A stretch of 64,000 bases of DNA from Blepharisma stoltei ATCC 30299. Its lineage: Eukaryota; Protista; Ciliophora. The stretch covers positions 1-64,000 of the forward strand of contig CBFDEM010000031.1 of the NCBI GenBank assembly GCA_965603825.1, read 5' to 3'. The notes below the pieces were generated by a model, which worked only from the letters and a program-made list of their open reading frames with translations, was not told where the DNA came from and made no database searches. This document shows positions 12,720-55,016 of this stretch, piece by piece (position 1 is the first letter of the stretch; each line of letters begins with the position of its first letter). The translations under genes and the position numbers were made by a program.

Positions 12720-13140
12720 ATTAAATATAAAATACTTTAGGGGGATTCATGAAGCCCGTGTACTTCTTATATTGTTCCAGTCTACTCTATTAAAGAAAGA
12801 TGTACTTTGATTTCTTCAATTTCCATAAGAGCCAAGCCGATCTCCAGCCTCACACAATAATTTTCTTATCAAATCACAAGTGGAGTGCCTCAGCTCGCTT
12901 CTAGTGATATTGAAAAAATGCTTCTCAAGTGCAAGATTCTTTAGCAAGCTATAAATATCTTAAAAGAAATGAGGATGCATGATTATTTAAAATTAAATAA
13001 CACCGCACTCCATCAGTCAACTGTTTAATAAATCCCTTTTCAAACACTTCTGGAGCTATATAGTCAGGAATTTTATAGTTGAGTAAGTCAGGGCTATGCT
13101 CCGCTCATTGTCTGCTCGCCTTTCCATATATGGTTTTGGC
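12720..13140 (-). pseudogene. AGC/NDR-type protein kinase fragment
   Basis: PDYIAPEVF (subdomain VIII) at ~13040-13067, followed by frameshifted remnants of the C-terminal lobe (EEIKVH). No N-lobe found. Confidence 0.55.
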
Positions 13141-39488: not shown

Positions 39489-39548
39489 ATATTTAATTAT
39501 AATCCATATAAACCAAAATCTACCTCATACAAATATCATTTATTTAAA

Positions 39549-52375: not shown

Positions 52376-52999
52376 TTAAAATTTATATTTTTTATTGAAC
52401 TTCACTTTTTTCATAGATCTTTGAGATGCTTCTTCACGATTAAGCTCATTATCTAGTCGATGAACTTCACTTAGAAGCATGCTGCTCAGCTGAACAGCTT
52501 CTTCTAATGCTTTTTTGGTTTTTTTATTTTTTTCTTTAAGTTTTTCGCAGTTTTTGCACTCGATTTTTCCTTTTTTGTAGGCATCTAGTTCTTCTTCTAA
52601 CTGCATCCTGGTGAGTTCTGATTTTGCACACTCTTTTTTAAGGGTTTGGTATTTCCGTTTTAAATCATTTTGAATCCTAGAACCGTCAGGCCACTGTCCA
52701 AGATCCAGATAGTTCTTATGAAAATCCCCAACATTTCTGAGACGTGAGGACGCAGGCAATAATGAACCGTCATCAATTGAATTCCCAACTGAGCTTGATT
52801 CCATGTCCTGTGCCAATGTTTTATTGCTAAAAAGGAGTGGGGATTGCTCTTCTTTATTGTCAAATAAGCTTGTTTTGAATTGTGAAACAAGTGAAGCTTT
52901 AAGTGAAGGAGCAGTGTTGAGGTAAAAAAATCTACCGTCTACTTCTTCAAAAGAAATGCTTTGGTTGATAGGGTCTGTAAGTGTCTTTTCAGCGTCCAT
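52376..52999 (-). CDS. Hypothetical coiled-coil protein with CxxC (207 aa)
   Basis: Intact ORF. ATG 52999 is preferred because it follows an AT-rich leader; 53047 is an alternative start. Confidence 0.75.
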   Translation of the reverse strand: MDAEKTLTDPINQSISFEEVDGRFFYLNTAPSLKASLVSQFKTSLFDNKEEQSPLLFSNKTLAQDMESSSVGNSIDDGSLLPASSRLRNVGDFHKNYLDLGQWPDGSRIQNDLKRKYQTLKKECAKSELTRMQLEEELDAYKKGKIECKNCEKLKEKNKKTKKALEEAVQLSSMLLSEVHRLDNELNREEASQRSMKKVKFNKKYKF

Positions 53000-53061
53000 A
53001 TTAAATTTTATAACTTTACAGGAGTTATATATTAACTCAAAAATCATATTTTGGGAGGAAT

Positions 53062-53162
53062 AAAAAACGTGCCACAGGCTAAGAAGGTTTAGACTGCTTA
53101 GACACTATGGCTTGAGAACAGTCGGGACATCTGATTTTTGGCTAGGCTCCAGCCAGACCAGT
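53062..53162 (-). ncRNA. Unidentified ~100-nt structured RNA, putative Pol III transcript
   Basis: Intergenic block with higher GC, two hairpins and a T6 at the 3' end. Its upstream motif and spacing match those of the RNase MRP locus. Confidence 0.55.
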
Positions 53163-53182
53163 AAGTTAAGTAAATTCTCTTT

Positions 53183-53204
53183 TATTTATTTTTACCATGC
53201 CATA
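53183..53204 (-). promoter_or_regulatory. Putative snRNA-type upstream element TATGGC-N7-AAATAAATA
   Basis: Same two blocks and 7-nt spacer as 54995-55016; about 20 nt upstream of the structured block. Confidence 0.6.
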
Positions 53205-53323
53205 TCTCCTGATTTACTAGTCAAATTTTCATATGATTTTCTCCTAAATCCATAATAAATTTCTAAGGAAATGTCCTCATATTTTTCAATTCAGCCTCAC
53301 AGGCAAATCATTGGTCTAATAAA

Positions 53324-53623
53324 ATGGCAGAGAGAAATAGATTCAAATACTTTCGAACCAACAAAGTGGGAAGAACAAGCCAGCTAGATGAAGAAACTGC
53401 CTTCTTTGAAAGGAAAGAAGAAGGGTCTCCTAGGAAGATAATTTATCGCAATGAGTGTCCTAATGAGCTGAAAGCCTTCGAAGACTGCATGAAGAGCACA
53501 GGAAACAACCTCAGCGCATGTGCTTCACAAAACTTAGCCCTTGGAACGTGTGGAAAGCACTTTTTTAAAGTCATAAACGGAATGTCGCAGCCATACGATT
53601 ATCATAAAGGACTTCCTAAATAA
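53324..53623 (+). CDS. Twin Cx9C (CHCH) mitochondrial intermembrane-space protein
   Basis: CPNELKAFEDC-x10-CASQNLALGTC. Confidence 0.88.
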   Translation: MAERNRFKYFRTNKVGRTSQLDEETAFFERKEEGSPRKIIYRNECPNELKAFEDCMKSTGNNLSACASQNLALGTCGKHFFKVINGMSQPYDYHKGLPK

Positions 53624-54717: not shown

Positions 54718-54780
54718 TTTATTATATAAGCACAGGATTACAATACATAAATAAATTAATTAGCCAAAACTTGTGATCTT

Positions 54781-54975
54781 AAAAAGCAATAAGCCCCGTT
54801 GAGTTTCCATAGTTGCATAACTGTGCTATGGCAAAGACCAGGACTCCACTTCCATTAGGAATCCAGGGGTTCTCATTCAAGAGTGGTACTTTCTACCCTC
54901 GGCCCGGGGACTTTCCCCAAACAATCTTAAGCGATAAACGCCTTTATGTGTTGTTCGATTGCAACTCTGCTTCTT
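54781..54975 (-). ncRNA. RNase MRP RNA
   Basis: CR-I GGGGAAAGUCCCCGG (54904-18), P8 hairpin with GAAAG (GARAR) loop, CR-V ACUCAACGGGGCUUA (54790-804) forming P4, P2 AGUUGCA/UGCAACU, P1 AAGCA/UGCUU, and a T5 terminator. Confidence 0.92.
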
Positions 54976-54994
54976 AAAATTGTCAAGTCTTGTC

Positions 54995-55016
54995 TATTTA
55001 TTTATTATTAGCCATA
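54995..55016 (-). promoter_or_regulatory. Putative upstream element of RNase MRP, TATGGC-N7-AAATAAATA
   Basis: About 20 nt upstream of the predicted MRP 5' end; repeated at 53183-53204. Confidence 0.6.

Follow-up and report, generated by a model that had tools for sequence, protein, structure and literature searches.

A predicted orphan small RNA gene shares an upstream element with RNase MRP RNA in Blepharisma stoltei

Background

Does a short, GC-rich and foldable stretch of intergenic DNA close to the RNase MRP RNA gene of the ciliate Blepharisma stoltei encode a small RNA of its own and, if so, to which kind of RNA would it belong? The stretch (53162-53062, minus strand) lies in a 64-kb window, the whole piece of DNA analysed here, which opens with telomere repeats CCCTAACA. 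An initial annotation had read it as an independent RNA polymerase III (Pol III) gene, possibly of an undescribed class, with two hairpins, a possible pseudoknot and an upstream motif in common with RNase MRP. The macronuclear genome paper annotated tRNA, rRNA, SRP and spliceosomal RNAs only (10.1101/2021.12.14.471607), so that a gene of this sort would have gone unannotated. Here we analyse the locus against the B. stoltei macronuclear assembly (41.46 Mb, 64 contigs) and weigh the explanations that it admits.

Results

The candidate, whose quoted minus-strand sequence agrees with the coordinates given above, sits in the 324 nt that separate a CHCH-like gene (53324, plus strand) from a coiled-coil gene (52999, minus strand; Table 1). 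The immediate flanks have a GC content of 17-28% and the candidate one of 46-49%; it holds no ORF, and none accounts for the stretch. The whole locus is bracketed by an imperfect 12-bp inverted repeat (53210-53224 and 53032-53046, minus strand), which pairs with p > 0.9 in the fold and is not significant as flank pairing.

Table 1. Coordinates of the candidate, its predicted parts, its neighbours and related genes
Feature	Position	Strand	Remark
Upstream element TATGGC-N7-AAATAAATA, candidate copy	53183..53204	-	MRP likeness reaches 53170 (24/35)
Upstream element, MRP copy	54995..55016	-	Exact motif match
Short form of 5' hairpin (earlier reading)	53131..53162	-	Predicted fold
Long 5' hairpin	53114..53179	-	Predicted lower stem 53179-53174/53119-53114
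Long 5' hairpin, 7x7 internal loop	53173-53167/53126-53120	-	Predicted fold
Long 5' hairpin, upper stems	53161-53157/53135-53131 + 53155-53149/53145-53139	-	Predicted fold
3' hairpin, 7-bp and 5-bp stems	53071..53111	-	Predicted fold; 13-nt loop 53096-53084
3' tail, ACG and six U	53062..53070	-	ACG where an ACA box would lie; may be a terminator or a trimmed end
Putative pseudoknot, 53123-53119 with 53096-53092	53092..53123	-	5-bp complementarity
RNase MRP RNA	54778..54979	-	106 bits; mature start ~54975
CHCH/Cx9C-like protein gene, divergent neighbour	53324..53623	+	99 aa
Coiled-coil protein gene, downstream	52376..52999	-	206 aa; same strand as candidate; further in-frame ATG at 53047
SNORD31-like C/D snoRNA	L083/L097, G000:C46:735617-735679	+	12-nt LSU guide

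The upstream motif TATGGC-N7-AAATAAATA was indeed found in exact form before both the candidate and the RNase MRP RNA gene, the latter being confirmed 1.8 kb away (Table 1). Far from being frequent elsewhere, it has these two exact matches in the 41.46 Mb and none in the control. The two upstream regions agree at 17/22 positions (p ~0.002), and the likeness extends into a longer block that is identical at 24/35 (p 0.0008 against shuffled and 0.0004 against real AT-rich DNA). Searching with a 24-position pattern and at most 3 mismatches returned two further weak matches only, while a relaxed motif gave 18 matches in the genome versus 7 in the control; three of the 18 precede RNAs, and at the other 15 no RNA is evident nearby.

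A third gene carries the element at the spacing seen in the candidate and MRP. The free-standing SNORD31-like C/D snoRNA has TATGG-N8-TAATAAATA, a copy with two mismatches whose end lies 18 nt upstream of the RNA; two-mismatch copies at such spacing occur in 9 of 13,852 AT-rich stretches (6.5e-4; ~7e-4). Four copies of TATGG stand within 90 nt upstream of this snoRNA, which also has an external precursor stem. The H/ACA snoRNA at 39489 shows a partial version of the motif only, and a one-mismatch match at U2 was taken as incidental, its spacing being 14 nt and U2 having a USE of its own. Judged from one C/D gene and MRP, the element may mark USE-less genes of the snoRNA type, not those of the U6 type. 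Whatever the fate of the candidate, TATGG-N8-WAATAAATA has the look of a second signal, independent of the USE, that MRP and snoRNA genes share and that could serve to find further heterotrich RNAs.

The proposed analogy with the Pol III promoters of U6 and telomerase RNA was not supported. The ciliate USE, absent from MRP and the candidate, is present at eleven small-RNA genes of this genome: TCCC[AT]TAA lies at ~-55 to -58 of U1 (two copies), U2, U3 (two), U4 and U5, and at ~-61 to -63 in U6, SRP, RNase P and a telomerase-RNA candidate, which also have a TATA of the TATTTA type or similar near -30. The combination of USE and TATA is the type-3 system reported for ciliates (PMC8287931). The last four genes, which the shared motif might have been expected to precede, thus carry the USE instead, and the motif stands before a box C/D snoRNA. 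Upstream of MRP and the candidate the best traces of a USE have two mismatches, and the type-3 arrangement (USE at ~-61 with a TATTTA-type TATA) is absent at the candidate. Two of the USE-bearing genes deserve separate mention. The locus L075:1360-1545 (minus strand; G000:C11 ~751115-751300), with a USE, a TATA-like element, the template ACCCUAACACC and a T5 end, is by its sequence a strong candidate for the telomerase RNA; none had been found with Rfam in the genome paper (10.1101/2021.12.14.471607), and heterotrich telomerase RNAs have been reported (PMC8287931). The second U1 gene (L035, G000:C18:451628-451788, plus strand) has an intact USE and an altered 5' splice-site-pairing end, AUUACAAUGG in place of ACUUACCUGG, and appears to be a variant or decaying U1.

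Both hairpins of the initial annotation are present in the minimum free energy structure with pair probabilities of 0.91-1.0, and in the form of 95-102 nt the fold reaches z = -2.3 to -2.5. Moving the 5' end out to 53179 gives a 112-nt form with an additional 6-bp lower stem (p ~1) that had escaped the earlier reading (Table 1). The longer form, whose boundaries were picked after inspection of the sequence, has z = -3.78 on the minus strand (0/200 shuffles) versus +0.07 on the plus strand, and -32 kcal/mol or less is attained by just 8 of 1,344 ORF-poor 112-nt windows, at six loci that include MRP, the neighbouring H/ACA snoRNA and the candidate. By itself z proves little, because a long hairpin at 12800-12925 (minus strand) with z -3.5 reads as a protein-kinase-like exon with UGA as Trp and is probably coding. 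As to the pseudoknot, the 5-bp complementarity between GACUG and CAGUC exists, and its significance across the whole linker (p = 0.07) leaves it unproven; over the pocket strand p falls to 0.003, a value obtained post hoc.

The three genes that carry the element also resemble one another in what follows it. In the C/D gene a stem between leader and trailer begins 2 nt past the motif (p ~0.9), resembling the external stems that snoRNA precursors of Tetrahymena have along with T-tracts (PMC3273799). The 6-bp stem that closes the candidate's 7x7 internal loop begins 4 nt past the motif. The MRP leader (54994-54976), which contains a T4, pairs with the trailer (54780-54763), so that at this locus (54751-55005, minus strand) the P1 helix is lengthened by ~30 bp into leader and trailer and runs through the U5 run; the flank pairing of MRP has p 0.012, a score that the U6 flanks equal. 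Since the U5 run of MRP belongs to this continuing helix, T-runs are not clearly terminators here. In Oxytricha, MRP and a C/D snoRNA share one nanochromosome (PMC3177221). The sequence GCCATAG, the reverse complement of the upstream TATGGC, recurs inside both the candidate (53105-53111) and MRP (~54827-54833, minus strand), 44-48 nt before their T runs, possibly by chance.

The candidate belongs to none of the RNA families against which it was compared. Rfam yielded no family, with two chance C/D matches only at E up to 10, and several of the features that the initial annotation had reported missing were confirmed as such: there is no C box (RUGAUGA) within 2 mismatches and no exact CUGA, no template 5-mer of CCCUAACA, and no tRNA found by ARAGORN. 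Of a type-2 promoter there is an A-box-like 12-mer with one mismatch but no B box, and neither an Sm site nor a USE nor an Rfam match points to an Sm-class snRNA. From ciliate telomerase RNA, which it recalls in its hairpin, possible pseudoknot and U tail, the candidate differs in lacking template and USE, and the L075 locus is the better candidate. With RNase MRP RNA (RF00030) it shares the upstream element, a leader helix right behind the motif, the strand and the proximity, but not the hallmarks of MRP and P (P4 pseudoknot, CR-I, CR-V), and likeness of the bodies does not rise above shuffles (p 0.18-0.73), so it is not a decayed, diverged or duplicated copy of the MRP body. Likeness or complementarity to U1, U2, U4-U6, SRP and RNase P was not significant after 48 tests; resemblances to a U1-like 5' end and to 5S-like, HDV-like, Y, vault and tRNA-Sec RNAs were dropped for missing features.

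The closest structural parallel is with H/ACA snoRNAs. The 112-nt fold has their order of hairpin, hinge, hairpin and tail with a pocket in a symmetric internal loop of the 5' hairpin, the hinge being just 2 nt long, and like them the candidate is free-standing, USE-less and ~100-112 nt in size, comparable to the 98-nt H/ACA snoRNA at 39489-39392 (minus strand). It departs from them in that no single-stranded ANANNA H box occurs in the hinge (ANANNA is found only at 53180 and 53137, in or beside stems), that freeing an AAGCCA hinge costs 8.8 kcal/mol, that ACG stands where an ACA (ANA) box would lie 3 nt before the 3' end, and in its possible loop-to-pocket pseudoknot and want of a significant guide target. 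The 39489-39392 gene is itself a compact H/ACA snoRNA of canonical build (H box AAAUCA, ACA plus 3 nt, z -3.5), enclosed by an AT-rich 10-bp inverted repeat; a target for it was looked for and not found. An H/ACA-fold processing chaperone such as U17/snR30 (Oxytricha Onc90) offers a working model, although the candidate is much shorter and lacks the boxes and the m1/m2 pair: no pair matching the Blepharisma 18S (ES6) was read by eye, and RF00045 has no match here. Compared by published features, Arisong (PMC3177221) is likewise an orphan small ciliate RNA with two helices found through flanking signals, but the candidate has none of its PSE/USE, 3' box, 3' GUUC tail, coaxial dumbbell and several paralogs.

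Searches for a guide target among rRNA and snRNA gave a best bipartite score around a target U of 10 versus a null mean of 10.8 (p 0.83); dropping the requirement for U gave p 0.09, and the linker p 0.07. Antisense matches to 18S ES6, the helix 22 region, h44 and LSU domain I were suggestive but not better than shuffles. Searching for further snoRNAs with U14 and two guide patterns produced no usable ones. In the candidate's own genome, BLAST and a covariance model built from its one sequence recovered the candidate locus alone, which makes it single-copy, and in metagenome scans a 21-nt candidate word had 0 matches and an MRP word 2, both non-ciliate. Synteny through three neighbour proteins (for the LRR neighbour, its last stop-free piece was the query) led to nine outside loci, none with the candidate or MRP. 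One of these (L042) retains the CHCH gene and its downstream neighbour, the 277 nt upstream there being unrelated DNA. The loci are distant, with neighbour proteins 51-77% identical, and absence from them in other ciliates is weak negative evidence. Nothing like the candidate lies upstream of two paralogs and one outside homolog of the downstream coiled-coil gene.

Discussion

We consider the locus to be probably a discrete, orphan small RNA gene. What the initial annotation called an independent gene is supported circumstantially by the non-coding GC island, the strand-specific fold, the shared upstream element and the lack of an Rfam match; its Pol III analogy with U6 and telomerase RNA is not supported. 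The candidate would be a single-copy, free-standing gene of a USE-less class that counts RNase MRP and one or more C/D snoRNAs among its other members. Its precursor may begin just past the AT-rich half of the element (~53182), with a helix 2-4 nt past the motif in all three genes, and may be trimmed to 112 or 95 nt with its 3' end at the U run. The product could be a nucleolar RNA that works like an H/ACA-fold RNA, with the 7x7 internal loop open to antisense pairing with (pre-)rRNA or snRNA. It would then be a chaperone of processing and not a pseudouridine guide of the standard kind; the 3' strand of the internal loop may be kept closed, through pairing with the loop of the 3' hairpin, until a target binds. 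This whole chain, from USE-less gene through trimming and nucleolar location to antisense chaperone, is offered tentatively, as the leading possibility but one that falls short of likely. It seems rather unlikely that the locus expresses a pseudoknotted RNA of an undescribed class, driven by a USE-independent promoter shared with MRP and snoRNAs, which would serve ribosome biogenesis in heterotrichs with neither H/ACA nor C/D boxes. New small-RNA classes are rare among eukaryotes; a dedicated Oxytricha screen yielded one, Arisong (PMC3177221).

The principal alternative in which the RNA is real keeps the model of the initial annotation with a non-USE promoter: a 95-nt Pol III transcript that begins at 53162, ends in the U run and belongs to a new class outside the nucleolus. 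Its TATA (-28 to -20) would be AAATAAATA, and La/LARP7 would bind the 3' hairpin and U tail. Mature MRP and C/D RNA start 18-20 nt past the motif and 53162 lies 20 nt past it, which keeps a 95-nt form in contention; T4 is absent inside the 95-nt body and T6 stands at its end, as the known Pol III genes of this genome stop in T4-T6; the A-box-like 12-mer could be added, and T-tracts behind Tetrahymena snoRNA genes have been interpreted as possible Pol III signals (PMC3273799). We nevertheless hold this transcript to be unlikely, given that all four type-3 genes checked carry the USE and TATTTA missing here, that there is no B box, that the leader pairs with the body and betters the fold, and that in MRP a T4 lies in the leader and pairing continues beyond T5. 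Quite unlikely, too, is that the locus is chance GC-rich foldable DNA without function, the shared block being a coincidence or the relic of a local duplication of the region upstream of MRP. The candidate's single copy, lack of homologs and absence from syntenic loci would fit, as would the similar z of a coding exon, the lack of RNA at most relaxed-motif matches and the post hoc boundaries, but the motif coincides with a GC island, a U run and a fold specific to one strand, the exact motif occurs just twice in the genome, and the body is unlike MRP.

Two further readings give the stretch another role. It could belong to the downstream minus-strand gene as a structured 5' leader, or as an intron of the 5' UTR, and regulate translation with an upstream ORF of 10 codons; it lies on the same strand, within a divergent promoter region and 15-63 nt ahead of the two possible start codons (53047 and 52999), and its T6 is no obstacle, as Pol II ignores T6. 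Such a leader is improbable, since Blepharisma UTRs are called tiny (10.1101/2021.12.14.471607), the gene's two paralogs and one outside homolog have no similar sequence upstream, and the upstream element is otherwise found at RNA genes. Lower still we rate a genuine H/ACA guide for pseudouridylation whose boxes are variants, each with G in place of the third A (AAG-CCA, ACG), which is very improbable: two hairpins, the right size, a 7x7 pocket 13 nt ahead of the hinge and an ACG three bases from the possible end suit it, and ACA variants do occur in Tetrahymena, but those reported are AUA, UAA, UCA and AAA (PMC3273799), not ACG, the hinge is locked inside a 7-bp stem, and among rRNA and snRNA no target with U at the junction beat shuffles.

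Should the reading as a USE-less, H/ACA-shaped RNA be right, a box-less RNA co-regulated with MRP would point to a so far unknown factor of rRNA processing in a ciliate that branched early and whose RNA biology is odd, a prospect whose weight is limited by its coming from one genome, one copy and a candidate known from sequence alone. The ITS1 of the rDNA spans ~37 nt only (L081:3033-3069, Rfam boundaries), an observation that bears on the MRP cleavage site.
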